DNA of 63,035 nt, filler included, from Intoshia linei (Eukaryota > Animalia > Orthonectida): NCBI GenBank assembly GCA_001642005.1. It is 5 parts of 5 records of this genome, joined end to end, with 100 filler letters (N's around TTAATTAATTAA, not from the genome) between each part and the next. Parts side by side here need not be neighbours in the genome. Positions count along the whole stretch, not along the records: positions 1 to 25,866 come from LWCA01000489.1; 4 more parts are not named here. One strand, written 5' to 3'. Shown here in pieces: positions 5,090 through 32,659 of the stretch (position 1 is its first letter; each line of letters starts with the position of its first letter). Below the pieces are notes generated by a model. That model was not told the origin of the DNA and did not search any database. It worked only from the letters and a program-made list of their open reading frames with translations. Both the position numbers and the translations under genes were made by a program.

Positions 5090-6471
5090 ATATGGACTTT
5101 ATAATGAATTATTTACTATATGTCCTGGTTATTTTTTGCTATGTATATTTTCGTTGCAACCTCATAAGGTAATTTTAGTAAATTTAAATTAATTTTATGA
5201 TAATACAGTTTAATTCATGGGTTCTTAACCTTTTTCTATTTGTCACCCCAATTTGGAATAAATTTTTAGCCGAAAATTTTTATTCGTCATCATAGATAAG
5301 TAGTTTTGGCTTTACATTTTACACCAAATAAATTAAAATTGATAGTACGTATTTTTTCTGGTCACTTTAATTAAAATTCAACGTATAAATCGTATTTTCT
5401 GACATTTTAAAAGCCGTCCCTATTAATATCAAACATAATCATTGAGTATTAATCAATTACAACATCAATAAATGGTAAAAACGAAAAATATCAGCTGTAT
5501 TTGATAAGATTTAAATTGGTTTAAAATTTAAATATTAACTTATTTTGATCGATAAAATAAAAAATGAATTATATTCATATATTATATGAAAGTATTGTGA
5601 TCCTACCGGCTACGACTCGGTTGAGACACTGTTCTATTATAATTATTGTAAAAAAGATGTTAGTTTAAATTTATATTGAAGGATATTTTAATAGAGTAGT
5701 ACATAATTTAATTTGATAATTTTTTCTAATTAAGGAGCACCGATTCATTAATCCAATTCTTCCATTTTTTACATATTCAATTGCTCAATGTACCAAAAAA
5801 ATTGTTGATCAATGCAACAAAAAGAAATATTGTCGTAATTTTCTTAAACACATAATTATGGCAATCTACACAACATTCGTATTGGTGTCTTGTTTGCGTA
5901 ATGTCAAATTAGCCTTATGGTATAAAGAAATTTCATTTAAGTCATTAAACGAAAATTTGCCTCAATTTGACGTAAAAATGCAAGGTTTAATTATTTATTA
6001 TTTAATTAATTATATAATTGAGATAAATTTATGTTTATAGAAAACTGCATATGTATTGGAGATGATTGGCACTTAATTGGAGGACATTTCTTTTTGAATA
6101 AGTATTTAAAATATTGTTTTATTTCATCAAATTTCAAAGCACAGTTACCTCAACACTTTAAAAAAAGAATGAACCTCAATTTAATAAAAAATTTTAATTT
6201 TCCAAACTATGCACATTTTGATGAAAGATTTAATGACATGAACAAAATCTATTCAGATTCATTGAAAAATGTCGATGCTTGTTCGTATCTCATAAAATGC
6301 TTTCAAGAAAAATTTCAAGTTGATGACAAAATTTTAATACAATTTAAATTTTTGGAAAAAATTTACATTCTCGATAGAGATAATACGAGACAACCTTGGC
6401 GTAGTTTATATCTCCCGTTTTTTGAAAAATTTGTTAAACGCAAAATGTGTGTATTATATATTAAAAAATAA
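5090..6471 (+). CDS. ALG9: ALG9-like alpha-1,2-mannosyltransferase (glycosyltransferase family 22), last three exons 5090-5168, 5735-5984, 6041-6471; upstream exons not found
   Basis: The spliced translation contains IFSLQPHK|EHRFINPILP (cf. ALG9 QPHKEERF), CIGDDWH, FISSNFKAQLPQHF, FNDMN and WRSLYLPF. Junctions are GT-AG and phase-compatible. Confidence 0.8.
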
Positions 6472-7016: not shown

Positions 7017-10000
7017 ATGACAGTTTTAATATTATGGTTAATTAATGGTTTTGCAGTTTTAGGTATTAGTTACATTTAATTCTTATTTTATAATACTAAA
7101 CAAATTTTTAGCTATTTCGCAAAATGGTACATTGTCAAGTAATACTTTAACCATGTTTTTTAGTTGATATTATAAACTTAATTATAACTATTTATTCCAA
7201 TGTCTTAATTACTCATTAATATAAAGCATTTAACCCATCACTATTCGCGATTGGATAAAAATGACGTATATTTATGAATGAAATTTGGCTTATACGATGA
7301 CTTAACAAATTGTAAATAAATTAATTTACGAGGAATGAAATCAGTGTTTCCCAATTGTGTGGTCAGGCCCCACTGGTGGGCATGACGAAATTTTTGGTGG
7401 GACATTGGAAATTTGGTGGGGTCTGGGAAATATTACAAATTTATAGGATTATGAAAAATTTAGATTAATTTATTGTTAATTTTATACAATATTCTCAGGT
7501 TTATAAATGGTTATGTGATACTTGAACCAATTAATTGCACTATTAGAATAATGACAAAAAACAAATATATCTTTAATGATCGTGGTGTATTGAATTCAAA
7601 TTTAACTAAATTGATGAGTATATGCAAAATGCCAAATTTGCAAAAAAATATTCGTATTCATTATCTTATTTAAATCAGTTAATTTAATTAATTAAAAATT
7701 AAATTTAGATTAAAATAATGAATCTACATTGAAATTTTACATTCATTTAGTTTTTGTGTTTTTAAGAAATATTAGTGCCACTTTAGACTAAAGTTTAGTA
7801 CAAAAATATGATAGCACTTAGGTATATATTTTTGTCTAAAAAAACTAAAAAAATTTTGCATTTTATTTTACATTATTTTCATTATATAGGTTAATATTAA
7901 TTCTTAATTTTTAAAACAAGGGTTTGTCAAGATTCAGATACCATACAAATACAAACGCCAACTATGGTTTATTATTGTTAATATTATTGATAAACGCTTA
8001 CATTTTTGTCTGTTATGTCAAAAAACATTATCCAATGATTCAATGAAACCAGGTCGTCTTCTATCTCATTTGGAAACGAAACATTCTAACAATGAAAATT
8101 CAATAGACTATTTTAAATCGTTGAAAGTAAAATTTTAAAATCAAAATAAAATTACATGTGCATTCGAAACTAAATCTACAAAAATTAATCACATGATTAT
8201 ATCTAGTTATGAAATTGCTCTATTGATATAAAAAATGGAAAGAGTCATACAATAGCTGAAAAATTAATAAAGCCTGCAATTTCATCATTTGTTAAAACTG
8301 TCCATCAATTAAATGGCAATGTTGTTGAACAAATGCTATTGAGTAACAACATCATCAGTAATAGAATTGATGATATGAGCAAGTGCATTGCAAAATAATT
8401 GATGGATAAATTAAAAACGAGAAAATTTTCATTACAAATGGATGAGTTAACTTTTCGTGACAGTGAAGCTCTTTTAATGGTTTATGTGAGATATATTGAC
8501 CAAGAACAATTCAAAGAAGAAATTTTATTTTGTAAATCTTCGGATACGATCAAAACCAACTTCAGGTGATATATTTAAGAAATTAAATGATTATTTGAAT
8601 GAAAAAATATACCAAAACATAACATAACTTCATGTTTAGCTGATGGAGTACCGGTTATGATGGGGAAAAAATGGTTGCTTGAAATTAATTAAAGATCAAA
8701 ATCTCAATATGTTGATTGTGCTTTGTATAATAATACATAGAGAAAATTTAATTGCCAAAAAGTTATGTCTCATTTTACATAGAATTCTTCATTCGATAAT
8801 AAATTGCATAAATTATATTAAAAAAAGTGCTAAATGTGAACGCCTTTTCAAAAAATTATGTATTGATAATAATGAAGAGCATGTGCGATTATTGTTACAC
8901 ACTGATATTAGCTGGCTATCCAAGGGAAATTGTTTAAAAAGGTTTATAAAATTGGTTTTATCAGTCAATTTTAGAAAATAAATCTGAATTAGACCTTATT
9001 CTGAGTATTCTGACTTATTCTGACTACTGATGGAAAAACATATGAGCTATTTAACTGATATATTTGAAAAATTAAATACATTGAATAAGAATCTACAAGG
9101 AAGAGATAAGATTCGTAGAATCAAAAAATCAAATATTTGGATTAATGTCACTATTAGATGTTTATATAGAAAATATTTCATCCAATAATTATTTATTAAT
9201 TAATCAATGAATTATTAATTTTTTTAAATTCATTTCTTTTGGTTAAATAAATCCCATGTTACAGAATTAGTAAAAAAATTATATTAAATCATTTAAAAAT
9301 AATGAAAAATGATTTTAATATGCGTTTTGAAGATATCAAACTTATGCATTTTCCATTGTGGTTGACACAACCTACTTTGGTGGACTTATTAAATGTATTT
9401 ATCAAATACCAAGAAGATTGTATATTAATGCATGATAAATCTTTACAAACTGTATTTAGCATCAAAGGTATTATTATATGGCTTACTGAAGAAGCCTTTA
9501 AAAATTATCCGACTTTTTCTAGGATTGCTTTGCCATTTCCATTCTCTTATTTAGCAGAATGCTGGTTTAGTGCAGTTATAGAGTTACTGACAAAAAAAAG
9601 AAATAGACTACAAATTTCAAAAAGTGGAGATCTACGATTAAAGATTATAACATTAGTACCTAATATTAATAAACTCTGTCAGAATCGTCAGGCTCAATCG
9701 TTTAATTAATTCTAAAAAATAAATACATTATTATTGTTTTTATCATTATTTTATTATAATTCGCTCGAATTTTTTTTCAGTGGGCATGAGATTTTTTAAG
9801 AGTAAAAGTGGGGCCTAGCATAAGAAAGGTTGGGAAACACTGAATGAAATATAATGCAATACCAGTGACATGAGTCATGTCATGACACGTCTTCTTTATT
9901 AGATTTGTTTTGAACTACAGTAGTGTAGGTCAATTTTCAACGTGAATAGAAATAAAAATGTGGCCTCGGCAAAACTAGGTGCTGTTGGTACGTAGTACAT

Positions 10001-13000
10001 AACAGTCAACCTAGTAATTTATATTATCTTTTAATGTAACTGTGGCACCATATGAATTTAAAAATTCAATTAAAAATTTAAGATAAATAATTAAATCTCT
10101 ACTTCAGGGGTGCACAACGTGCGGCCGTGAAAGCGTTTATGTCCGGCCATTAGGTCCATGTATTGTATTTCCAATGAATCCATTATATTAAATTGTATTT
10201 GTAGGTACTTTACAAAATGATACATTAATAGACAAAATTGAAGAGAAGAGTGTTAATATGACTGGTAAATTTATGGTTATCTGAGATGATTGATCTCTAG
10301 TAAATTACCCCTTTGAATAATATTCGTTATTTTAAAATGAGATTTGTTGTAAAATTTAAAACAGGCTATGTGGAATTGCATTGTATTTATTAAACCACAT
10401 GTCATTTTTGCACTAATGTATGCTTTTTAGGTACTTTAATGTATTAAGGCTAAATTACAGAAAAAATTAGAAGCCAATACATTTTAGATTGTTTACTTAA
10501 ATAATTAACTATTGCACAGGCTTTTGCGATTTTATAATTCATATTATCCATGAATTTTCAACGAGTTAAATAGTCTATTTTAATGTTTTAATGATTCTTA
10601 AACTTAAAAACTTATCACACTAATTTCACCCAAAATACTTCGCGGAACCCTTAAAAATTTTTAAATTAGAGATAACAGAAATACTTTCATAAGGAAAAAA
10701 ATATAAAAGCTCAATTTTACTGAAATATATATTTAGTAAAACACTTATTGCAAAAAGCTTTATTAGAATCGGTGCTACTTAACCTGTTTGTTCCAAAATG
10801 TATATTTATATTTTTTACATAGCTGGAAATAATTGACCTGGTTTACGGGGTACCAAATTTAAAAAAGATTCAAAACCCTGATTTAAGGTCTAAGGGTTAT
10901 AGTTTAGATCAGGGATTCCCAAAGTGGGCGATATCGCCCCCAGGGGGCGATTAATTCAGTTAGGGGCAATTATAAAAACACTGTATACTCAAAGATTGAT
11001 TTTAGATGGATAGAGTGAAGCGTTGATGAATTTTTTGGTTTTAAGGGGATATTTTTATAGCAAGTTTGGGATTCACTGATATAAAAAGTGACAGTAATAA
11101 ATATATTTTTTTTTAATTAACACAATTTTTTAATTATTACATGTTGAATAATGAGTTACTTTTTAAATATACATACGAGATAGTTGAAAAATTTTTTACG
11201 GGGGCGTTGAAAAAATATATTGTTAAAAAGGGGACGGTAGGCAAAATGAGTTTGGGAACCCCTGTTTAGATTAAAGTTGTAGAACATTCCAATTTTGTTG
11301 TATTTATTTTCATTAGATAATATACGTTTAGTAGGAACTCTGCAAAATGATACTTTAATAGAAAAAGTTGAGGAGAATATAGTTAAAAAGAAAAGTAAAT
11401 ATCTAATTTTTTATTTATATTATTTCTAATAGATGTGGATGTTGCTAGTAAATTATTGTACAATTTTTTATTTAAACTAAAATGTAGTTCATATAAAGGA
11501 TGTATAATTTTCCCTTTATTGGTTATTATGAAATGATAAATTTACTATCCTATGTATATGATAATAAATAGTTATTTCACATACAATTATAATAATAATT
11601 TTTTGTTAATGAAATGATTTTCCAAAAAAAAAGTGAATAATAGAATACTTTTTTGAACATCAAGGTTTAGTCTAACATTGAAACTTTTAATATATTTTAA
11701 TTCGAAAAAGCTGTATTAAATGTGATTTTTTTTTTAAATTCTGGGACTATTCGTTATTTCAATTTTTAAAAATAATGGGTAGTTTGTGGTTTTGACCGTG
11801 AAGACGTCATTTTGTGATATGATAATTTTTTGTATGTATTAACTGGAGATAACTATATGAACCGTAATTTTAATTTAATTTTTTAATTGTAAGACTATTT
11901 TCATTTTTAAAAAAAGGTAATTTGAGGTTTTGGCTCTGAATATTTTGTTATTATATATCTTTTTAAAATTTAATTTTAATGTATGAAAATGTTGATGATT
12001 TCAAAATTTGTATCAGAGTGTATATTTTATTAATTTCTACGACTCGTTTAATTACAAAAAAGGATACTTGAGGTTTTTGACCGGTAAGATGTAATTTGCT
12101 GAAATTTAAATTTGTCTTACTTTCTCCCCGGAAAAAACTGACCTGAACTTTGGGATTGTTAAAATTCTAGGTCACTTAGTTATTGAAATAAACGATAACA
12201 CACAATGACTGATTTACCGAAAAACAAAAATATTATACAAGTTTGGAATCCTTAAGATTAACATATATCAATACAATTTAACTAATTTGTCAGTCTATGA
12301 TATTATAACATAAATCTATACTTACCGTAACTAAATTTTTTCAATTTATATTTTCTCAAATAAAATTTATTTTAAAATATAAATTTTTTTCGTGGAACAC
12401 CAATCTTCTTCTCCCGTCACACAGTTTGGGAATTGCACTAAGCTATTTAATTTTTTTTAGGTTAGATATCAAAGATATTTAATTATTTTTATTCCATTTG
12501 TTGATATATATTTTGCAAAAAAATTGATTCTGGTCAGTTTTTTTTTCCTAAGGCTTGGTAAGACTTTTCTAGATAAGCGAATTTTTCTTTTGGGTTTGAT
12601 CTGTGATTACTTCTCGAAAGTTTGGTAAATTTTTATATTTCAATAGAAACTTGGTAAAAGTGAATTTTTCCTTCCGTCATGAAAAAAATTTATAAAATAT
12701 GACGAAATTCTTCACTTTTCCAGAAATAGCAAAATGACTGTAACATATATACAATATTATAATGCATAATAATCTTAGTCAGTAAAAAATTATAATTTAT
12801 TAATATGTTCATTTATATTATTTATTAACATTATTTATTATTATATTTGAATCTTAATAATAGTGGGTAAATTCATAAAACAAAATATAAAATTTCCAAT
12901 TTAAAAGTTATTAATATTAGTATTAATAATATAATATAAAATTTTAATTTACAGTATGTAAATAAAATTTAATTGATATTTTTAAAAATATATTATTAAT

Positions 13001-16000
13001 ACGACACTAATAACCAAATGAATTAATGATCAGTGATCACACCTAATTTCTTATAAAATGTGGTTTATCCGACCAGGTCCATCGTAAATAAGTAATAATA
13101 TTTTAAAGATTTTTTAATTTCAATATATTTTTATAAAGTTGTTTTTCTCATTTGTACATTAATAATTTTGTCATACAGCCATTGAAATTTTTTCAAAACA
13201 TTTTCAATATCTAAAACATTTAAAATATACAGATGGTAAATATTAAAAAAGTTTCATCAACTTTTTGATAATTTACAATCAATTAATCTAGATTGTAAGT
13301 TTTTAATATTCAAAAATCATTAAATTAATTATTAATGTACATAATAAATTTTAAATGAAAAATTACATCAAATTATAGGTGGTAAAATATGTTCATATAA
13401 TAATAAAAACAATAAATAGAAAAATAATAATTAATTTACATGTGTTAACTTAAATGTGTCAATTGTATTATGATTATAATTTATAACGCAATATTTATAC
13501 TGATTATAATTATATTTCATGTATATTTTTAAATATAGTTGGTAACAAAGATAATTTAAAATGATAAAATAACTTACAAAAGGTATTATTATTTATTATC
13601 ATTATGAATTATTAGCAAGTAAATTCTGTTTTTATTATCTGTTATTATAATATTATATTTTTAACATGTGTTATACAAAATATTTTATTATTTATTATTA
13701 ATTTAGCTTGTAATTATTGAAAACTATGATTTAACTTTTTATGTTTATAAATATGCCATAAATATTAAAGTATTTGAATGTTATATTGTGAAGTCTACAT
13801 ATTGAAATTATTTATACATTAAAATTTTAATTAGTTAGTAAAATTTTACATTATTATTGCATTACATAGAATTACAATATTTACAGAGATAGGTGAACAG
13901 TTTATCAGATGAACATCGCAGTGTCTTGGTAATAAAAACTATTATAATATAATAGTAGCGTCAATGTCTCAAAAATCTATACAATATGTTTTTACTAATT
14001 TCACTAATAACGGATCCATACAACATCCACGCAGATTCGATTACGATCAACCTTTTAAAGTCGCTGCATTATAATGCAGATAAATATAATTATTGATTCC
14101 ATTGTAATTTCAACAAGTTAAAAGGGGCGTGGAAGCTGATGTTGGAAAATAAAATAATTAATTACCATGGAATGATGAAAACAATCAAAAACATAATAAA
14201 TCTATCATTTCTTTGTTAACATCAGATGTCAATATAGTAATATGTAAATAGAAATGCATTTTAGTATTTATGAGTGAATATTGGTTATTTATAATATTGT
14301 ATAAAAAATAATACATAATATGTAGTTGGTAAATTTAATTTAAATACTTTTGTTTAATTTTATCATTTTTTGAGATAAAATGTATAAATTATTAATTGAA
14401 TGTATTAATACAAAAAATTATAATACAGTTTACATTATATCAGTGATTTAAACCGTTTTAATCTTACTTATGGATCAAATTTCACTGAATCAAACATTTT
14501 AAGAACACTTAACCAAAAAAAGTCTTTCAGAATATATAATGTACGCTTTACTACCTTTTCGTAGTCAGATCCCTAGTAACATCAATTTTCTAATGGTCGC
14601 ATAAAATTTTTGCATAAATTTTAAATAAAATGAAAAATTTCCAACGTTTAAATATAAAATGTATGTAGTTGCGCTTTATATTTCAATTCACATACTTTAC
14701 AATTGAGTATATGTGGATTAAATGGAAAATTAATGGTAAAGACTTTTTTTGTGCGGCCCGCGTAATAATTTTTTTTCACATTTGACGCGCCAAGCAAATT
14801 GACTTTGACACACCTGCTCTAGAATTTTTTTTTTAATCACTATCGTACATATAAACTAATTTTTTACTAATTACGAGATAATTTATAACGTTTTTTATCT
14901 AATTTTTAATAAACATTCAATTAGATGGCGTTTATTAGAAATTATTACTATCAGTGGCGAAAAATAATGTGGACCCAGGAGTCCATATGGACGCGTTGAT
15001 AATGTTTTGTGTATATTTAATTGTTATGTATTCAAAAACTCACGATATCAAGAAATATTACTATTTAATGGTTTTTATTTAAAAAAATTAAATTCAGTAA
15101 ACAAGTGTGTTACTATGGGGAAAATTCCATATTATAGGAATTAGGGAATTTTCGATTCTGTAAATAAGGGCGGAGTAACAATTTTTTTATTAGAAAACAC
15201 ACCAGAAAATAATTTTTGAATATAATCTCAAAATGAACACTCTACAATTTGTTTGGTTGCCAACATTGCTAAAACTGCTGCAATTTTTACGTTGGGAATC
15301 CTGGGTCTATGTCAATGATGGCATAACTTTTCAGTTGGTGTGTAAAAAAAAATTTTTGTTGTTTTCGTTTATAGTTGCTTAGCACTTCTAAATGATAAAT
15401 AATTTTTGGTATGTATTTAACAGCGTGTCAGGCAGAATGCCTGTGTATGTCACTAGTGACATGCGTGTCATATTTTTGCATCATTGATCTATGTTAGAGT
15501 TAAATTATAGTTTAATTATTTGCAGTGAGTAAATTTACTTATTTTTAAATAGCAGTAGTAGTATACACTATACCAGCCAGGTCAAACTTACGGCCCGTAG
15601 GCCGCATAAGGCCCTTTTCAATTTTAAGTGCGGTCAGCCACGACTTCGTATATGTATATATAATATATTATTAATACTAATAATAATATTAATATATATG
15701 ATATAATATAGATATTATTAAATATTCCATAATGAATTGTTTATCATCATTTGCACACCTAAGCTGCGAGAAGATATATTTAATGATATTAATGATACGA
15801 TTAAAATCATGTTTATTAATTAATGATAATTCACAATAAATTCTAAATTTTTAAAAATACGTGCAAGTCATATCAAATCAAAATTCTAGTTTTATCATTC
15901 GAACATTAATTTAAAAAATGAATCTTGCACAATGAATACAAAACCACCCAAAAAAATATTTCACTTCTAATTTCCAGGATAAAATTATCACAAAATAATG

Positions 16001-19000
16001 AAGAAAAAAGAACTCACCAAGTTTACTCCGTAATTGACGACGATAATCTCGATTATCCTTTGAATAATATTAGCACAACTGACCGAACAATTTTTCACAA
16101 ATTAAAAAAACCATGGCCGCTCGAACTAAACACATATTCGATTTCGATTATCTGATTTGAGATCACTTTCAATACATACTGTGTATTTGAAAAAAATATT
16201 ATATAAAAAATTTTATGATGCGGCCCGCCACATATTTGAGTTTGATATGGGTGCATTATACAGTTTTACATGACTCATTGTATCTAACTTTTATTTTTAA
16301 TATTCAATTTATTTATAAAGGTATTTATAAAATTTTTAGTCGGTTAGTTGTTCCTATTGAAAATCAATATATAATTATAAAAATTTTTAAGACATAGTTC
16401 ATTGTAAAAATTTAATACATTTTAATATACAATAGTTAGTAAATATTAATATATTTATAACGTCGTCAATTAGGTGGGTAATGAGGAAATTGAGATATAT
16501 GATTTCTAGAAAATATTAGTAATGTTTAATTCATAAATAAATATGAAAATTGTTCAATGAAATATAAAAATTTTTATATTTGATCGTAATATTAAAAGTG
16601 TTGAGTCCATTTCAAAACTAGGTTGTAACGAAAAATGTTTTTAACGTGGAAATTCTTGTATGAAATTAAATAGTTTCTAAACTAAAGTACCGTTTTGTTT
16701 CATACAGTGAAACACCCTAATGCAGATCGAAGTCACCGAAAATAAAAAATAGGCCAATAAAAAAATATATACAAATGAAACGTAGTGTCGTATAGCCTTA
16801 AAAATAAATGAATTTAAATACATAATAATACAATAAATTAACCCTTAGCCACCTAATGCTCTTGATTTTACATTTTGAATTTAACGCACAAAATAATTAT
16901 GATTTTCAAGACTATAATTTTTTAATGCTCAATTTGAAGAATGATGCCTCCATTCCACAAAAATCTTGTCGAGGACACCAATACGGGTCTCATGTTACAG
17001 TGAGTTCGGCGCTTCCCTATTGTCGGTATGAATTTAATATATAATTTATTGCCTTAGTGAAATTTTATATTTGTACTAGGTTCACCGGGAATGCGTAGAT
17101 TTCTGAAGTTGAAATTTTGTATTTATATCAATTGGAATAATCTCTATCAGAATAATCTTTTTTTTAATTTTCGGACCGTTTAATTATTTCAGATTTTTGG
17201 TTTTAATAAAATATTTCGGAAAAAAAATAAATGAATACTATAATGGTTTTTTGACCGTGAAGTCGTCACTTATTCTTATGATTGAAATTTTTTGTGTGTG
17301 TTAACAGGATACAACTGTACCACATGTAAATTTTTTTATATTCTAAGGCTGTTTTTATAAAAAAAAGGGTAATTTGTGGTTTTGGCCCCGAACATATAAT
17401 TTTTTTTAATTTAAATTTATGACAATGTTTATGATTTTAAAATCCGTATCAGCGTAGTTATAATTTAAATTCTCCAACTTGTTTGATTTTCAAAAAAAAG
17501 GACAATTGGAGTTTTTGACCCGTAAGATGTGAGTTTGAGAGGTTGAAATTTATCTTATTATATGTCCCGGAAAAAACTGTAATTGAAATGTGGACTTTAT
17601 AAAATTCTAAAACTGGTAGTTATTTCAATAAACGATAACACAAACAAATATTGCATAGTATATTATAATATGCTATGATTATATAAGTACACACAAACAA
17701 ATATTGCGTAACATATTATATAAATAAAGATGTATTAAAATTACCCACCTAAAAATTGTGAAATTGAACCATGAAATAAGTAGATTGGAAATCCTGTTTT
17801 GGGATACTCTCAATACAATTTTTAAATAATTATATTCGAATAATATTAATAATTTTATATGTATTAATGATGTATAATCTCATTATAATTAGTCGGTATT
17901 TAAAAATATAGTCATATTTAATTTTTTCATTTACATGGTAATTTTAATCTGATTCATTTTTTTATAGTGTGTAAATTATATCATACATTATTTTACATGT
18001 TGTAAAATGAAAAATACACAAAATTACATTACATTACGTTATCGGTGTATCGATGTGAATAAACGAATCTTTCTTATCTGTATTTATGATTTATTATTTA
18101 ATTAATTAAATATACTAATTACTAGTAATACATAATAATAAAGTGTTACATTAATCATGTTAAGTTAGTTATAAACATGTACTGTTTTGATATTATTTAA
18201 ATTTAGCTGGTAGTTAATTGAAAAAATAATAGTTTTAAATTATTTATTTCGCATATTTTTTAAATTAATATGTTAATAAATCAATTATAGTTATTCATAT
18301 AAAAAGTATCAATTTAGCATGTAAAAATTTTGTATTTGGAATATAAATATATAAATAATAATAATAACAAATTTGCATTACTTTTAGTAATTCGTTGTGT
18401 TTTAATTTAAATTTTAAACAAAATTTTTTGAAAATGAGTATTTGAGATTGAAAAATTGCGAAGGAATGAATTATATAGATTTTCACCCATATTTCTTTAT
18501 TATAAATGTGTAGACGTTCAATGCAATTTTTTTTAAAATTGTAGGATCAATATTTACATTTTCAATTTTTATTTTAATCGAAATATTTGAAAAATATTGG
18601 TTGATAATATATGAAAAATTATTTTTAACCGGGAATGCGTAGATTTCTAAAGTTGAAATTGTGTATTTATATCAATTGGAATAATCTCTATGAGAATAAT
18701 TTTTTTTTTAATTTTCGGTGATTAATTATTTCATATTTTTTGTTTTAATAAAATATTTCGAAAAAAAAATATGAATACTAAAATTCTTTCTTGACTGTGA
18801 AGGCGTCACTTATTCAGATTGAAATTTTTTTAATATGTTAAAAGGATAAAACTGTACAACCTATAAATTTTATTAAATTCTAGAGCTGTTTTTATTAAAA
18901 AAAAAGGTAATTTGTGGTTTTGGTCCTGAAGATATATTTTGTTTAAATTTAAATTTATAATAATATTTATGATTTTAAAATCCGTATCAGAGTATATATT

Positions 19001-22000
19001 TTTTTAAATTTTCCAACTCATTTGATATTCAAAAAAAGGACAATTGGGCTTTTTGACCCATAAAATGTGAGTTTGAGAGGTTGAAATGTGTAACACACCC
19101 GGAAAATACTGTAATTGAAATGTGGACTTTATAAAATTCTAAGACTGGTAGTTATTGAAATAAACGATAACACAAACAAATATTGCATAGTATATTATAA
19201 TATGCTATGATTATATAAGTACATACAGCCAAACAAATATTGCAAAGCATTTTATGTAAGTAAGGATTATACAATTTACTATTGTTCCATTTTCATGTAG
19301 CATTTCAAGTTCAATGTTTCATTTAAAAAAATATTTTAAATAGTTAGTAATATATATTATATATAAAATAATTATATATATAATATTGTATAGAATAATT
19401 TAACCAAATTATTATTAATATTAATAATACTAATTTAGTGTTTAGCAATTTTATGAAACTATAAATAAATACATCATTAGAAAGTAAATTTTATATTTTA
19501 ACCACAGTCGCTTATTTACATTGTTGTATACGATATATAATTAAAATAGATAAAATCTAATTTAATTTAACATGTTAAAAAAACAGCTTGTAAATTTTAT
19601 AATTTTATGAAAGTATAAATAAATGACAATAATAGTAAAATGTACAATTTGATAACATTATAATGATATGTTAACAATTTCATTTTAATTAATTTTTAAA
19701 AAATTTATTGTATATCGTGTTTCACTTGACATAAATATTTATATTAAAAATTCATACTTTTTTATTTAAGATATCGTATTATTAAGATAAGTTATTAAGA
19801 TAACAATGAATATTACTTTCTTGTATTTATTTATAAAATTATATGTTTCTCTATTGCATCTTGAAATTTCGACCTGACCAGATAGAGTTATTACACAATT
19901 CGAATCATAAGAGTATCAGCTACAAAATGATATGTACTAGAAAAGTCTATATTTAAATTTATGATATAAAACATTAAAGTTGGTAATTTTTGTATTTAAA
20001 TGTATTATATTGATTATAATAATTACATAATTTTAATGAAGATGTTATTAAAAATATTAACACATTACATAACATTATAGCCGGTAAAATTAAACATAAA
20101 TATTTAAAGAGTCTTCATATCTTTTATTTCTAAAATTATAAAATTAAAAATTTCATTAGACAGTAAAATATTAATTTTTAATTTTTTTATCAAAATTTGT
20201 ACATTTCTATATATATCTTATATTCTATAATCTATTTATATATATAATAAATAAATCATGGTTAAGTTGGTACGTCTTTTTATTTTTAAATTATTTAATT
20301 TTTAAAATTTTAATTATTATTTTTCTAAATTAGGATGTAATTTATATAAATATTTATTTAATTATATACACCAGTGATTCAAACTGTTTTCCGTAAAAAG
20401 AAGGTTGGTGTGGAGCGAAAAAATATAGTGTGATAAATATACATTCGTGTATATTACATTTACATTTGTATATAACTTATATGTTTATATTAGCGTATAT
20501 AAATATTGATCACGCTATTTAAAATTTGTACTTTTGATTAAAAATTGGAAATATATCATTTTTTCATATAAATTTTTTTAAAACCATTTAAAAGGTGTGC
20601 CATAAAAAAAAAGTTTGAGAATCACTGGTATACACTATAACCCAATTAGTGTTGACTGAGTATGATCAGCCATGTTACCATAATACATTTTAATGAACAT
20701 CTACTGAATTGTTCATTATAATCTGTGGTTACACTGTATTTAGCTTATTTTACTAAATATAGCGTACTATTACTAATAATAATTCTAATAAAATAAATCT
20801 TTACAAGGCCGTAAATATTTAATTTTTTGTAATTTTGACATACAGGTTCATCACTTAGTGACGTTCAATTCAAGTATCATGTGAGTCTTAGTCACATCAG
20901 TAGAATAACCTTGAAAAGTTAACAATGACCATAGAACAATATAAAAATATCCATTATTAACATTTTTGTTAAATGATAATCAGGGATTGGAAATGATTAA
21001 TTCCAATTAATTATGTTGTATAAGCCATTTCATTGTTTGCTAAATATTAATTTTTGAATTAATTGATTTTTTTGCAATTTATTGAAAAATGAAAAGATAA
21101 TTTTCAATGAATTGGTTTTTTCATATAACTGAAAAAATATAAATTGAATCCTTTTATTGACGAATGGTTGGATGAAAAAATTAATTTAATTTTTTTATGT
21201 AGTTCAAAAATTAAATTAATAATAATATATATTAAGGTGTCAAGTTGAAACTGTCAACACTCGTTGTAGCGTATCGCAGTCCCATCATGCTTTATTTATT
21301 TCCAGAAAAAATTTTATTTCCAAATTCGAAAAAAGAAATAAAATAAATAATATGAAAATATTTTTTAACAACTATTTTGCGAATAAAATAGTTTGACATT
21401 GTATAATAAAATATTAAAAACTTTTCATTATTCTATGGAAATTTAAAAAAAAAAAAATGCGTTAGTCACCAGAAAAATGATTTATTTAACTTAATAGCTT
21501 GAATGTTATGTACTTCGAACAAACAGCATCCTAATATATTCATTATAACCACACGACAGTTGTTTAAAAATGATTATGATATGGTTATCAATCTTCAATT
21601 AATTGAAATTTTTTGTATATTTTAAAAAACCAATTTATGGCAATTATTTCATATAAATCAATTAATTGAAAAATATTTTTGAAGTACAAATTACTTCTGC
21701 AAATAAAATAATGAAATAGTAATATAATTATGAGCGGTCTTTTTATACATATATTAAATTTGTTTATATATAATATACACCCTACCACCCAACGAAGAAT
21801 GTCAATAATTTCAATTTGTACCAAAACAAAAGTTTCCATTTTTTAAAAAAACCCCGGGCAAAGCCATTAAATTTTTGAACATTTTATTACTCATACATAT
21901 AATAATAAAATAATATTTATTAATTTTTTGAAAATTATTATTGATTAAACCATCTTTTTTTAATTTATTTTAATATTAAGACTATACGTTATAGTATAAA

Positions 22001-25000
22001 ACTTAGATATAATAAATTTAATTGTTGATGACTCTACATTTCTACTCATAAGATTAACAACCCAACAACTAATTTTATAGCCCGCGCATACTGATAGTAT
22101 ATAAACAAATTTCTGGATTATAATAGCATGAATACAACGAGACAACAAGAAATGATGAAGAATTGAACCAATTAATGAAGCATATTACGATCAGCCAAGG
22201 CGTTGTATTGCCTCACATCAATTCAACTTTGATTCCCAAGAAGGCCAAGGCTACTGGCAGTACCTAAGCAAATTATAGACTATTGTAGATATTGTACATT
22301 AGAAAAATTACATAAATAGGATATTTTTAAAATTATATACGCACCAATAAAGGATTTTTTTAAAATTTACATTGTATTTAAAGTCTTGGCTTTTTTGTCA
22401 ATTTGAGAAAATTTGTTATTTATATTAATGGCTTTTCGACTTATTTAACTCGCCTCTACTCGAAATTCCAATCCCTGGTGATTATATTAAAAAATTGAGG
22501 TACATTGATCAGTTTCTATTAAATTTACGAGTTTATAATGTACATTTATTGATGGTATTAGATTAGTAAAATAATTGTGATGACTTTTTAGAAGGTAATT
22601 AATTTAACTATTTGTTTAATAGTCTGTAAGTAAGGTTATACAAGTGATTAAAGTCTTGTAAATTATACATGTAGTAAAATGTCTTTTCAAGATTTTGTTA
22701 ACAAATTATTAAAATTTGACTCACTTAAACAGTCTATTACTTTAGTCACTTCTACTGGACGTCATAAAAATAAAATTAAATTTTTATATTAGTGGGTTTG
22801 TTTATTAACATAAAATAAAATATTTTAAATAATTCTGAAATTTGGATTTACAAAGTTAATCATTATGATTAGGACGTAAATTAAAATTGATCAAGATTAA
22901 TATTATTAATTTAATAATATTAAAATATTAATTGTTATAATGTGTACACCAGGGATCGACAACCAAAGGCCCACAAAATAATTTTGTTGACCCTTTGAGT
23001 AATAATATAAATTATTTATTTTTAAATGTTTCAATTTTTAATACTTTTCTACCATAATTGGCTGATTTTAATCATTTTGACTCTGAATTTTCACATCGTC
23101 CTGGAAAATATTTTGTTAAATTTACTAGAACCGTTTCTCTACAGTTAAAATATAAATTTATCATGTGTAAATTTTTAAAACGGGACCTGTATAATTTTTG
23201 AAGAAAAAAAATCAACTCACGAGACGCAAAAGGTTTCCGCTCCTAATATACATGTATCGTAATAATGAATAACATTTTGTTTAGTAAGTAATTTTATTAA
23301 TCATTTTTATAATTTATGATTGAATGTATTCACAATTCAATTGTAAATTTTGTATTATGTATTATTATAAATATCATAACACATTTTATGACAATATTAC
23401 ATATCCGTTGCCGAATGAGCCAACCATCAAAATTAATCTATGCTGATTAGCACTATTTTTGAAATTACTTAACCTAACAATTGTATAAAAGTTTACACCG
23501 ATTTGGATTAGATTTGCACAGGCTTTAATAGCATATTTAAATATATTTCAGAGAAAAAATTAAAATTGAATATTAATTAAATTTAATAATTTTAGTATGT
23601 AAAATTTTTTATGTGATTATTTTATTTACATTATTAATTACCAATTAATAATAATGTAAATAATAGTATATAAATGTATGTAAAATAAATATTCCAATTT
23701 TAATAGTATGTAATTATGCTTTTATTTATCTCATACAACATATATCGTGACTTGATTTTTACAATGTACCATACATACGTTAATTAGAATTTCATATATC
23801 CTTTAATCTAAAGAAAATCCTAATTTTTTTTAAAATTGATGTTGATTATTAAAATTGCTGAAATATCGAAATTTCTCAAATTGATTCAATGGGAGATATA
23901 CATGTAAATAGGTTCATGATGATCAGGCCCGTCATATTAACTTAACCCCTTTCCAAGACCCTGCTCAAAATAATTTTAATAAAACCGATCTAACACTATT
24001 CATAAATATATATTTTAGTGAGTAAATACTATTATTATTACAATTATTTTTTTTCTTAAATTTATAATTCTATAATTTTTATAATATATAATTAATAAAT
24101 ATGATACATAAAAATCTATTAAACATAATTCTTAGTGCGTAACATTACATAAAACCATTTATTAAATATTTTTTTTAATATTTAAATATTACAATTAAAA
24201 ATATAATTATAATATTTTAATACAATAGCTTGTAATTAAAATTATTAGATATAATTTATAAATTGATAACATCTAATAAATCGACTATATTGAAATTTAA
24301 ATTGTTAAAAATAGTGTGTAAATTGAATTGTAGAATTGTATAAAATCAACATAGATCAGTATTTCTTAGTCATGGCTCACGACTAACGAGTAAACGAACC
24401 CAATCAGCCTGAATTTACTCAATTAATTTTAAAAAGAAATTTATTTTAGCTTGGTTTTTTGTGAGTAAATTGAATATTAAAATTTAAGTGATTGTATTCA
24501 TAAATTTTTCTTTTTAACGGGTTTAAAATGATTTTCATCTTTAATTTATTAATTAACATTTCGAATTAAACATTACAAAATTACACCAAATACTATACAA
24601 ATCGTTATTTAAAACTAGTTGATTATGTGCCTTGAGTCTAGAGTCTAGACTCATAAATTAAAAAATAACACATACATTTATTTGGTACTTTTTACAATTT
24701 GTATTTAGTGGGTTAATTAATTGTTATTTAAATATAAATTGTAAATTATATGTATCATACCTGTCCAATATCAGGTACCTCGACGAGAAATGCCAGATTT
24801 GCGACTTTACACACGACTTATACCTTTAAAATTCAAATCTACCACACTACAATAAATTGAGACAGATTTTATAAAACCTACATTTTATTTTAAGTTATTT
24901 CAGTTGATGATAAAAATTGTAAAAAAATTAATTTAAAATCTTAAATCAAAATTTCTTTAAATGACATATAAAGTAAATGTGAATTCTTTAAATATATTTT

Positions 25001-25838
25001 TAAATAAGGTATAGATTCCTGCATTATATCCATTTTTAAACCATTTAAATTACATGTAGATTTAAATTTTAAACGAAAGTAAACATATGTAATTAATTAA
25101 TATAAACGTTTCTAAAGTCGGTATTTTTTAAAAAAATTTTAAAAAAATTACAAATATATTAATTAAATTTTAATTAAAAATTTTTTATCATTCCTTTATA
25201 TATAAAGTTAGTAAAATTATTTTAATTTATCAACAGTAATATATTAGTTTCAAATTATTTTACTTACAAATAATTGTAATTATTATTGTAAATATAGACG
25301 GTATATATTCCAACACTATATAAACTAATATAAATAAAAGTAACATTTACTTTTTTCACAAGACCCAATTTACCAAACCTGAAAATCAAAAATAAAACCC
25401 TCAAAAATTTTTAAAAAATTGAGCCATTTTAAAAAAATTATGTCGATCCCTCGAGTACAGTATATTTGGTGCTGTTTCCCATTTAAGAGTTTATAATTGC
25501 TTCATCATATAAATTAAAAAATAAAAGTGTTTACAAATATCTATAAATTAATCGACGATTGTGTTTGTATATGTTATAGTTCATAAATTTTATTTTACAA
25601 ATTTAGTAGGTAAAGATATATTACAATAAATTAATTACAATCGCTAGAACAAATTATTTCTAATTATTGTCAAAGTATTTTAACCACCCAGTTTTTATAT
25701 TTCTTTTATATTTTCTTAACTTGTGATCCAGCGATAGTCATATCATATTTAATATTGTTGAAATATGAATAGTGTGTAAATCAATATATTATATTAATCA
25801 TAAAAATATTTTAATAATTAATAAAAATAAAAAAGATG
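7017..25838 (+). CDS. Putative micro-exon gene encoding a secreted/membrane protein: signal-peptide exon 7017-7062, phase-1 exons 7112-7138 (27 nt), 10205-10264 (60 nt), 11335-11394 (60 nt), 11433-11447 (15 nt), then ~46 three-nucleotide exons 12779-25838; 3' end lost in the gap
   Basis: The N-terminus reads [15 protein letters not shown]|AISQNGTLS. All listed exons have AG/GT boundaries and are phase 1-1. The AG-NNN-GTAA units join without stops only in phase 1. Could be more than one tandem gene. Confidence 0.65.
7342..9842 (+). mobile_element. Full-length hAT (Buster/Charlie-type, ZBED5/ZBED8/FAM200-like) transposon with a frameshifted transposase
   Basis: TIRs CAGTGTTTCCCAA / TTGGGAAACACTG and a perfect 8-bp TSD AATGAAAT. 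Transposase pieces include [45 protein letters not shown] and [18 protein letters not shown]. Confidence 0.92.
9935..10014 (+). mobile_element. Helitron 3'-terminal fragment
   Basis: Reverse complement of ~1105-1190; the hairpin is followed by CTAG|T at 10011-10014. Confidence 0.7.
10910..11264. mobile_element. hAT-type MITE
   Basis: TIRs CAGGGATTCCCAAA / TTTGGGAACCCCTG flanked by a TTTAGAT duplication. Confidence 0.8.
11640..12258 (-). mobile_element. Diverged Helitron family copy (5' part)
   Basis: Similar to ~2000-2600 (TTTGACCGTGAAG, CCCGGAAAAAACTG, AAACGATAACACA). Confidence 0.65.
16471..17751. mobile_element. TIR element containing a nested Helitron copy (~17085-17731)
   Basis: Inverted repeat TAGGTGGGTAAT / ATTACCCACCTA; the internal part matches the Helitron family. 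Confidence 0.6.
18400..19267 (-). mobile_element. Helitron family copy
   Basis: High similarity to ~1760-2600; ends ..TAAGGAT, which is the 5' A|TC on the minus strand. Confidence 0.75.
20372..20627. mobile_element. hAT-type MITE
   Basis: TIRs CAGTGATTC / GAATCACTG with near-perfect TSD ATATACAC/GTATACAC. Confidence 0.75.
20981..22477. mobile_element. Non-autonomous TIR element (hAT-like) carrying a histone H2A gene fragment
   Basis: TIRs CAGGGATTGGAA / TTCCAATCCCTG; TSD ATGATAAT/GTGATTAT (6 of 8 match). Confidence 0.7.
22148..22267 (+). pseudogene. Histone H2A C-terminal fragment
   Basis: Translates [39 protein letters not shown], cf. canonical H2A [30 protein letters not shown]. No upstream H2A sequence is present. 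Confidence 0.85.
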
Positions 25839-30006: not shown

Positions 30007-30145
30007 ATATCAAAATTTATTGACAGTTTTGTTTTGACATTAAATAAAAATTAAATGTTTTGTTTTGTTGTAAATTTGTATTTAATAATATTGTTTTTAT
30101 TATTTTAAATGTTTATTGTATCATGGTTATAAAGAATACTAAAAT

Positions 30146-32659
30146 ATGGAAATTATTTTGGTAATTTTTTAAATTGTATATTTACTGTTTTAATTTAATT
30201 AATACAACATTTAAATAGCCTAGAGACCACCAACCCAAAATTTTATTATGGAAGTATGTTGATTTACAATGTGCTGATAAACTGATTCAAAAAACTACAA
30301 CAGATCAAATTCATAGGTAAAATATCATTTTGTCAATTTACTTGATTTCTTTCAAATTTTAAATATGCGAGAAAAAATGATATTTAATTCAGTGGTTTCC
30401 TAACTCGTTATCTGCCCATTTTGTGAACACCCAATAAAAATTATTCCACTAATAAAAAAAATGCAGTATTATTACTGGAAACGAAACAATTACGCATTAA
30501 CGGTCTACGTATTTTTCAAATGTAAAAAATTCTACCAAATACAGCACCTTATTTTAGACGTAAATATATATTATAAACTTGAATTATTTAAAATTACTAA
30601 TACATTAAAAATACTGACTACTTAAAGTAAAGATTTTCATATTGGACCTCATACTCATACCTCATACTATATCCATATTGGGCGTCTACTTAAATCCAAC
30701 CATTTATACTAAAAATCAAAATTGGAATAAACGGTAACACACACAAATAAATATTGCAAAGAATATTATATAATCAAGGATTATAATAGTAATGTATTGT
30801 ACCCAATTTTAGTAGATGTTTAAAACGACGTTTAAAAGTATAAAAATTTAAAAATAAATAATTTGTATATTTACTCAAAGGGCCACCAAAGTTATTCTGT
30901 AGGCCACTGGTTGCTGATCCCTGCCTAAAGGGTTGGTAAATTTTGGTTAAAGTAAAAATGGTTAGATTTAAGAATATTCACTTCTATATATTTGTGGATA
31001 TTATAGATTACTGGACCCGATAGTTTATCAATACTGCAGATATTTAGAATCCGAATCGAAAGAAAATTTTCCAATTTTAAAAGATTTACTCTATTATGCT
31101 GTACAGTTTGCAAAAAATCAAAAATATACCGCTGCAAAATTGAGCACAGTATTTTTTATGATAACAATGGAATGTTAATCGGTTTCATGGATTGACGAAT
31201 AATAGTCTACATAAGAGACTCTTAAACTTTTTAGTTATAAAATTAAAACAAAAATAAATGTATGCTTTCCTCGTGTGACCTTAAATACAATTATATTTAA
31301 TGAAAACCTGGATCCTTTTATCAAAATCTGATGATTAATTAATTAATTTTTTTAGTTGATCAATATAATTATCGAGTGTCACAATGTTGCCACAGGTTTA
31401 TTTATATTGAAATGACGTTAATTAAAAGTATATTGGTGGTTCTCAAAAGTTCGTAAAATTTAAATATAATGCTTTAGTCGGGTGTATCAATTTATCGGTA
31501 TATTTACTGTTAACCCTACACTACGTAATACTGGTTGTTTAATTGATCAGTATGAAATTAAGTCATTCTAAACATGAATTTTAAAATTATCCATACCCGA
31601 GATGAAGTTGTTTGTTAAAAAAACTCAATTTTTTGATAATCGTAATAAATGTATTCTAATTCACCAATAGTTATAAAGCTATAAAAATTCACCAAATCCC
31701 TAATTTGTGAACCACTTATAACTTGCAGGTTTCACGACACAAAATTTTAGAGACTTATTTTGACAATACAAATAATGTTGTTAAATATATAAATGAATTG
31801 TTACTTTGCCATTCCATTAAGGTAAAAGAACTATAGCGAAATTCAATTTAATTTTTTAGAGACCTCCATTTTGCATTGATTTGTATAGCCAGCAAGAAAT
31901 ATTGGATATTAGTACTTATATAATGAATTCTTATATTAGAAATATCAAGCTATATAAATACGTTTTTACGAAAATGGTAATTTTAAAATGTTATTCTAAT
32001 CAGTAAATATTCAATATCACATTAATATTAGATTCGATTGGATTTGTCAATTACCTATCTAAATGATAACATCCGTTATGAAACTTTTGGTAAATTTTTA
32101 TGATTAATTTGCGAGTACTGTAATTATGAAATTATTATTATTATTAAAATCAATATTTTAATTATTTATAATTCAGTTATTATCGAAAAGCAATGTATAT
32201 TTTGCATCCTAGATTTTCCGTTGTATAAAATTTTTGTATTATTTTATATATTAAATTTTATAGAAATTTCAAAAAACGAATTATCGAGCACGCAAATTGA
32301 TGATGAAATGTCTGTGTCTGATTTAACTGAAAAAGGTATTAAAACGATTAATTTGAAAATATTAAATATCTTATTTTAAAATATTATATAATTTTATAAA
32401 TTTATAACAGATAGTAAAGCTAGTAAAATGGAAAGTGAAAATCAAGGTTTTAAATAATGTCTCTAAATTAATGTAATATTAAGAAATAATTACAAATTCG
32501 GATGATATAAAGCTAAATACCATGGTGGACACATTAATACAATCTGAAATGAAGCGCCTCAATTTAATAATAGAAGATAAAGTTAAACATTATGAAGCAA
32601 AAATGCAAGAACTTATCAAAGGAAAACCACGAAACAGTTCAAAAAAAAATAAAAAGTAA
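30146..32659 (+). CDS. CFAP119: Cilia- and flagella-associated protein 119 (CCDC189)-like, exons ~30146-30160, 30219-30316, 31007-31148, 31356-31395, 31751-31821, 31860-31976, 32032-32089, 32264-32335, 32411-32446, 32485-32659
   Basis: The spliced translation has PKILLWKYVD, LKDLLYYAVQFAK and [56 protein letters not shown], matching recalled CCDC189 motifs ([33 protein letters not shown]). Confidence 0.85.

Follow-up and report, generated by a model that had tools for sequence, protein, structure and literature searches.

The stretch of DNA analysed here (the window) comprises 63,035 nucleotides of the orthonectid Intoshia linei, five parts joined end to end, and carries on its plus strand, at positions 12779..25838, an array of 46 three-nucleotide units of the form AG|NNN|GT. 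This pattern is real, and chance or composition cannot explain it. We consider it very likely that the units are exons of a protein-coding micro-exon gene, in which a signal-peptide exon and four further phase-1 exons are followed by at least 59 serial coding exons of 3 nt. Arrays of the same architecture recur elsewhere in the genome, and it appears likely that they represent a class of one-exon-per-codon genes with about 20–30 loci and several hundred exons, in which arrays can exceed 20–30 kb and are spliced serially and constitutively. All coordinates are positions in the whole joined stretch; the contig with the array is C516 of the 41.6-Mb I. linei assembly, in which a beta-tubulin exon matches with 100% identity a protein annotated as I. 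linei.

The array had been proposed by a sequence-only reading in which the units were listed by eye. All 46 listed sites could be verified in the sequence as AG followed by the given triplet and GT, and recounting gave the same values for the donor GTAA (37 of 46), for GTA (42 of 46), for triplets beginning with T (28 of 46) and for stop codons among the triplets read in phase 0 (four). The triplets start at positions 12779, 12864, 12955, 13233, 13292, 13379, 13539, 13616, 13707, 13835, 14326, 15526, 16340, 16436, 17893, 17968, 18165, 18207, 18318, 19344, 19481, 19587, 19980, 20081, 20160, 20267, 20334, 20808, 22592, 22623, 22793, 22873, 23285, 23596, 23707, 24019, 24136, 24229, 24315, 24709, 25118, 25208, 25298, 25607, 25773 and 25836. 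Two of them, 22592 AAG and 22623 TCT, are separated by a spacer of 28 nt; either one of these candidates may be spurious or they may be used alternatively.

Site check, spacing scan and weight matrix agreed on this array. When AG-N(k)-GTA was counted between 12700 and 25866, a peak appeared exclusively at k=3 on the plus strand, as the sequence-only reading had predicted: 43 occurrences were found compared with 6.7±2.3 in 100 dinucleotide shuffles (z of about 16). All other values of k from 0 to 15 gave 2–11 occurrences each on this strand, and the minus strand gave 5 at k=3. The longer motif TAG-NNN-GTAA occurred 30 times on the plus and not once on the minus strand of the same region. No second spacing peak was found up to k=69. 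Zero-length recursive splice sites can be ruled out as the basis of the pattern, with 8 occurrences at k=0 versus 8.1 expected while k=3 gave 43. For the first 12.7 kb, the absence of a comparable array noted in the sequence-only reading was likewise borne out, as they contain AG-N3-GTA 6 times on the plus and 8 times on the minus strand, without enrichment. A splice-site weight matrix trained exclusively on arrays of other contigs (threshold 10 bits) identified 52 sites past 12700 and none ahead of it on the plus strand, compared with 3 on the minus strand. Of the listed sites, 41 reached the threshold with this independent matrix; site 20267 scored 7.7 bits, and the sites with a GTT donor (16340, 18165, 22793 and 24709) also had lower scores. 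Scanning over exon lengths with the matrix gave 41 exons of 3 nt on the plus versus 1 on the minus strand, and lengths of 6–36 nt stayed at background level in the array scans, so that enrichment was confined to a length of 3.

The array reaches the end of its contig. A second contig, C2227 (reverse strand), overlaps its final 44 nt and adds 13 sites, which brings the total at this locus to at least 59 triplets on both contigs. At about 330–1000 of C2227 (joined-sequence positions 30051–30742) lies an element that is bounded by terminal inverted repeats and has, on the opposite strand, an open reading frame (ORF) for an acidic product. A genome scan, which the sequence-only reading had proposed for finding further arrays, revealed the same architecture on about 20–30 contigs. 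A pattern of three consecutive sites matched 38 times, distributed over about 20 contigs, compared with 4 matches of its reversed control; for a two-site pattern the numbers were 114 and 40. By the two-site pattern, long arrays with spans of more than 20–30 kb lie on C2698, C2340 and C1697, and additional arrays on C1522, C1017, C1037 and C1593; short arrays exist as well, for instance on C261 with 7–8 triplets. Two-site matches were distributed unequally over the contig strands (84 forward and 30 reverse, with 23 and 17 in the controls), an asymmetry that may come from a few very long arrays. Pooling the array loci yielded a set of 82 kb, in which YAG-N3-GTAW occurred 271 times on the array strand versus 16 times on the opposite strand and was unenriched at spacings other than 3. 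That the arrays are recent paralogues of each other was rejected, since the loci have in common only transposon copies and low-complexity matches.

By consensus, length class and shortage of AG, the spacers fit ordinary spliceosomal introns. They end in GTAA(A/T)T...TAG, with T at position –3 in 78% of the array sites, A as the fourth intron base in 87% and T as the sixth in 71%, and G is depleted 5' of the acceptor AG. The lengths of 303 array spacers show a sharp mode at 60–90 nt, a floor near 45 nt and a long tail, and only 2 of the 303 are shorter than 40 nt. The median intron of I. linei has been reported as 57 bp (PMC6543705), and the introns in the tubulin genes of this species (loci on C503, C1991 and C2621) are 38–39 nt long with GT...TAG ends. 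Compared with the tubulin introns, those of the arrays are longer (mode 60–90 vs 38–39 nt), and their GTAA(A/T)T donors vary less, a comparison of donors that rests on three ordinary I. linei introns starting with GTTTGT, GTATAT and GTAATG. Within the last 17 nt of the spacers AG has a frequency of 0.002–0.003, compared with 0.016–0.020 farther upstream, and is thus 6–8 times rarer. Such an AG-exclusion zone is a classic mark of real 3' splice sites. The triplets themselves are poor in competing splice signals: GTN was found 5 times versus 15.1 expected, AGN 4 versus 12.2 and NAG 18 versus 28.8.

Two other interpretations of the spacers were rejected. They do not form a repeat family: as had been noted from the sequence, they are not repeats of each other, and blastn between array loci returned only low-complexity AT matches and transposon copies, outside which the spacer sequences are unique. 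Nor are they mirtrons or other hairpins, as 181 spacers showed no excess of RNA structure (mean folding z 0.05) and Rfam gave no match; their minimum free energy of –0.08 kcal/mol/nt equals that of their reverse complements.

The evidence that the triplets are joined and translated comes from a reading-frame test on neighbouring triplets. In phase 1, a junction codon consists of the last base of one triplet and the first two bases of the next, and the sites were selected by criteria independent of the triplet letters. The logic of the test is that stops across junctions are avoided in the true phase only, because neighbouring triplets are joined and read. Between neighbours in genomic order, phase-1 junction stops occurred in 2 of 303 cases, versus 12.9±2.8 upon permutation within arrays (P<0.0002). 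At lags of 2–5 they occurred 7–12 times per 224–283 pairs, which is the chance level (11 of 283 at lag 2), and when neighbours were taken in reversed order 16 of 303 junctions gave a stop. The two other phases behaved as expected by chance: 26 of 303 neighbour junctions contained a stop in phase 2 (24.6 expected), and 23 triplets were themselves stops in phase 0 (29.8 expected). The depletion in phase 1 persisted when only spacers of 40–130 nt were considered (1 vs 7.6±2.2; Fisher P=0.0015) and when the array of the window was excluded (1 vs 10.3). Stop avoidance that is ordered, limited to direct neighbours and specific for one phase implies that joining and translation of the triplets are frequent enough to be seen by selection.

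In the window, the sequence-only reading had described the joined triplets as stop-free in phase 1. This is correct for all 46 listed triplets and remains so after addition of the 13 triplets of C2227, but fails if the weak GTT-donor site 22793 is dropped, because a T|GA junction then arises between 22623 and 22873. The composition in phase 1 resembles that of codons: the frequency of G at codon position 1 is 0.31 compared with 0.29–0.37 in I. linei tubulins, and at position 3 the frequencies of T and A are 0.41 and 0.28 compared with 0.42–0.43 and 0.29–0.34. T-rich second codon positions yield a sequence rich in V, I, L, F, A and Y, in which cysteine accounts for 0.9% of the residues. Taken together, intron hallmarks, recurrence in the genome and neighbour-only stop avoidance in phase 1 support the proposal that consecutive 3-nt exons are read in the phase of the upstream exons.

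Upstream of the array, five plus-strand exons could be assigned. Exon 1 (7017..7062, 46 nt), recognised by reading the sequence, consists of ATG, 15 codons in total and one further base; it encodes M-T and a 13-residue hydrophobic core, ends in phase 1 and is followed by GTATTAG. This N-terminus is signal-peptide-like and is regarded here as a putative signal peptide. The other four were located by a scan with acceptor and donor matrices and by translation: an exon of 27 nt (7112..7138, flanks TTTTTAG/GTAATA) encoding ISQNGTLS with an N-x-T sequon, two exons of 60 nt (10205..10264 and 11335..11394, the latter with flanks TAG/GTAAAT) encoding 19 residues each, and one of 15 nt (11433..11447, flanks AATAG/GTAAAT) encoding VDVA. 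All four are symmetric, with TAG and GTAA-type flanks, a length divisible by 3 and an open reading in phase 1. The pair of 60-nt exons are tandem paralogues: conservation is much stronger in the exons than in the flanking sequence, and several of the differences between them are synonymous (TTA/CTG, ACA/ACT and GAA/GAG). In the transcript they may occur together or in a mutually exclusive manner. A Q-N-x-T-L motif with its N-x-T sequon is common to both of them and to the 27-nt exon. Used as a DNA query against the genome, the 60-nt exon matched only itself. As proposed earlier, the upstream exons share phase 1 with the array, and every one of them agrees in this respect. We infer that the phase is set by exon 7017..7062 and kept through all exons into the array, and strand, order and phase suggest that upstream exons and array belong to one transcript.

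For this gene the following mechanism can be proposed. The signal-peptide exon would be followed by exons of 27, 60, 60 and 15 nt and then by at least 59 exons of 3 nt, the triplets being separated by short GT-AG introns of mostly 50–130 nt and by long introns with transposon insertions. The introns would follow the first base of a codon, so that a triplet would complete one codon with its first two bases (positions 2 and 3) and open the following codon with its third; every spacer would be excised by the spliceosome, and the joined triplets would be translated in phase 1. Exon definition should be impossible for an exon of 3 nt, which would be too short for simultaneous binding of the factors for its 3' and 5' splice sites. 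U1 contacts the last three exon bases and the first six intron bases. At a 3-nt exon this contact region would directly abut the AG of the 3' splice site. Because such an exon is too small for exon definition, splicing is probably stepwise, intron-defined and recursive-like, gaining 3 nt per step, and the product of one ligation would serve as upstream context for the 5' splice site used next. The missing pairing across the exon may be offset by the uniformity of the GTAA(A/T)T donors. The gene is predicted to encode a glycoprotein, either secreted or membrane-bound, that would have N-x-T sequons in its N-terminal part and, after this, a segment with many V, I, L, F, A and Y residues.

Other explanations of the array were considered. 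The triplets could be splice-like decoys or regulatory elements in one long intron or in an untranslated transcript, being joined rarely or never, or the entire array could be skipped. This would agree with the compactness of normal I. linei genes, from which a gene spanning over 23 kb and carrying upwards of 60 introns stands apart. However, ordered stop avoidance between neighbours in a single phase requires joining and translation, the composition in phase 1 is codon-like and the triplets shun internal GT and AG that would compete with the splice sites, all of which makes decoys improbable. Real splicing of a non-coding RNA, in which the introns would be the useful part (mirtron- or snoRNA-like, or as stable lariats) and the exons would be minimal as in a snoRNA host gene, could account for the small information content of each 3-nt exon and for spacers of 60–90 nt, a size resembling that of mirtrons. 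Yet the spacers are neither structured in excess nor recognised by Rfam (folding z and energy as given above), have no common sequence and tolerate transposon insertions, and avoidance of stops specific to phase and neighbour would not be expected from such a host, so that we regard this possibility as quite unlikely.

Equally small is the probability we assign to triplets that are coding but individually optional, each serving as a cassette in a combinatorial production of many peptide variants, as has been proposed for the micro-exon genes (MEGs) of schistosomes. Since all exons are symmetric and of one phase, any subset would stay in frame, and such a system would suit an animal with a parasite–host relationship and a putative signal peptide in exon 1. 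On the other hand, stops at lag 2 are at the chance level, which weakly argues against frequent productive skipping; the test is a weak one, since a stop would result from no more than about 4% of skips. In addition, loss of 22793 gives TGA. Cassette use would be a refinement of the micro-exon gene proposed here and does not exclude it. Hardly credible, finally, is a loss of the spacers at the DNA level by programmed elimination, or an origin of the pattern as an artefact of repeats, target-site duplications, assembly or composition. Points in favour are that elimination of DNA has come under discussion in dicyemids (PMC6543705) and that the contigs are AT-rich and of small size. Against both speak the asymmetric GTAA...TAG boundaries without inverted-repeat ends, the AG shortage and the intron-like lengths, as well as the unique spacer sequences, the 6–10 times lower counts in shuffled and reversed-pattern controls and the occurrence on many independent contigs.

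Several points weigh against the interpretation as a serially spliced coding gene. The case is built on genomic sequence, and serial splicing of 3-nt exons at such a scale has no experimental precedent. The connection of the upstream exons with the array in one transcript is deduced from their arrangement. The array of the window has no power in the reading-frame test when taken alone (0–1 stops vs 0.6–2.4 expected), and the coding signature emerges because arrays were pooled. The spacers contain neither a clear branch-point motif (TAATC/AATCA is enriched about 2-fold) nor a clear polypyrimidine tract, and spacer 22595–22622 is, with its 28 nt, under the usual floor; all other spacers but one are longer. 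Furthermore, the 3' end of the gene lies beyond C2227, the end of which falls in a transposon, and it is hidden because the element with terminal inverted repeats interrupts the locus there.

The proposed gene shares features with known micro-exon systems. Schistosoma MEGs have a first exon encoding a signal peptide, a coding region composed for the most part of short symmetric exons, with micro-exons of 6–36 bp, and secreted or membrane-anchored products (PMC5825161). The I. linei gene is similar in its putative signal-peptide exon 1, its coding region composed largely of symmetric micro-exons and its occurrence in a parasitic organism; it differs in that the exons of its array are all 3 nt long with at least 59 in series and no enrichment at 6, 9 or 12 nt. 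Bicycle and megacycle genes of aphids encode a signal peptide at the N-terminus and contain numerous tiny internal exons that nearly always begin at codon position 2; in one megacycle gene the micro-exons number over 100 (PMC9168663). Like these, the I. linei gene combines a large number of exons that all follow phase-1 introns with a putative signal peptide. Unlike bicycle genes, which are hemipteran and have paired CYC motifs and much longer micro-exons, it belongs to an orthonectid, encodes 0.9% Cys and shows no CYC motif. The resemblance to bicycle genes is therefore one of architecture, not of ancestry.

Single 3-nt micro-exons are known from animals and plants, where they have canonical AG/GT flanks, are spliced by the normal spliceosome and are often missed by aligners and annotation (e.g. 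PMC8632122, PMC8831610). In contrast to such isolated exons in otherwise normal genes, the putative ones of I. linei occur serially by the dozen and in hundreds genome-wide. The arrangement of a 3' splice site beside a 5' splice site, together with the stepwise working model proposed here, is also reminiscent of recursive splicing at the ratchet points of Drosophila. Ratchet points are AG|GT sites with a zero-length exon, by which a long intron is removed stepwise and nothing is left in the mRNA. In I. linei, sites with k=0 are not enriched (8 vs 8.1), and each step would leave a translated triplet. A literature search for arrays of 3-nt exons or for orthonectid micro-exons returned no report, the I. 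linei genome paper being outside this search. The I. linei arrays are thus regarded as an extreme form of micro-exon genes with a layout undescribed so far.

The remaining features of the window are transposons, repeats and a neighbouring gene. A decayed hAT-type transposase with a BED zinc finger is present in four frame-broken ORF pieces at 7908..9706 on the plus strand (PF02892 zf-BED, E=0.003, under the curated cut-off); it sits in the long intron 7139–10204 and contributes nothing to the gene product. Two copies of one transposon family, with no strand assigned, lie in long introns of the array: 17081..17668 in intron 16439–17892, with relatives of 80–84% identity by blastn on C2186, C1697, C2286 and C1522, and 18451..19200 in intron 18321–19343, identified by blastn between array loci. 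Another repeat copy, again without assigned strand, occupies 22965..23253 in intron 22876–23284 and has relatives on C1522, C2186 and C970. Open segments on the plus strand at 5720–6468 match weakly the C-terminal part of an Alg9-like mannosyltransferase (PF03901, E=1.5e-4, just under the cut-off) and probably represent a neighbouring upstream gene that ends about 400–550 nt before the start codon of the micro-exon gene. A Pfam search on the ORFs of the window yielded weak zf-BED and Alg9-like matches only. Copies of a repeat at 1–121 are found with 92–96% identity on C910, C2243, C3174 and C265.

The approach taken here can be extended, as the neighbour-triplet stop test with its lag and order controls is applicable to any genome for which RNA data are lacking. 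Annotation would miss whole gene classes of the kind proposed, as 3-nt exons escape ORF finders, gene predictors and spliced aligners, and if the interpretation is true, a portion of the proteome is hidden from every current predictor and read aligner. It would further mean that the spliceosome routinely handles exons smaller than its recognition footprint, probably step by step in a way akin to recursive splicing, and the array would offer a natural test case for the pairing of splice sites without exon definition. It also raises the question of how exon-junction complexes and nonsense-mediated decay operate when junctions are 3 nt apart. With tens of serial exons at the minimum in-frame length, the gene would mark an extreme of split-gene architecture. 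Besides MEGs and bicycle genes, I. linei would then provide a third independent case of same-phase micro-exons combined with a signal peptide in host-exploiting animals, a hint that secreted or surface proteins of such animals may have evolved convergently.

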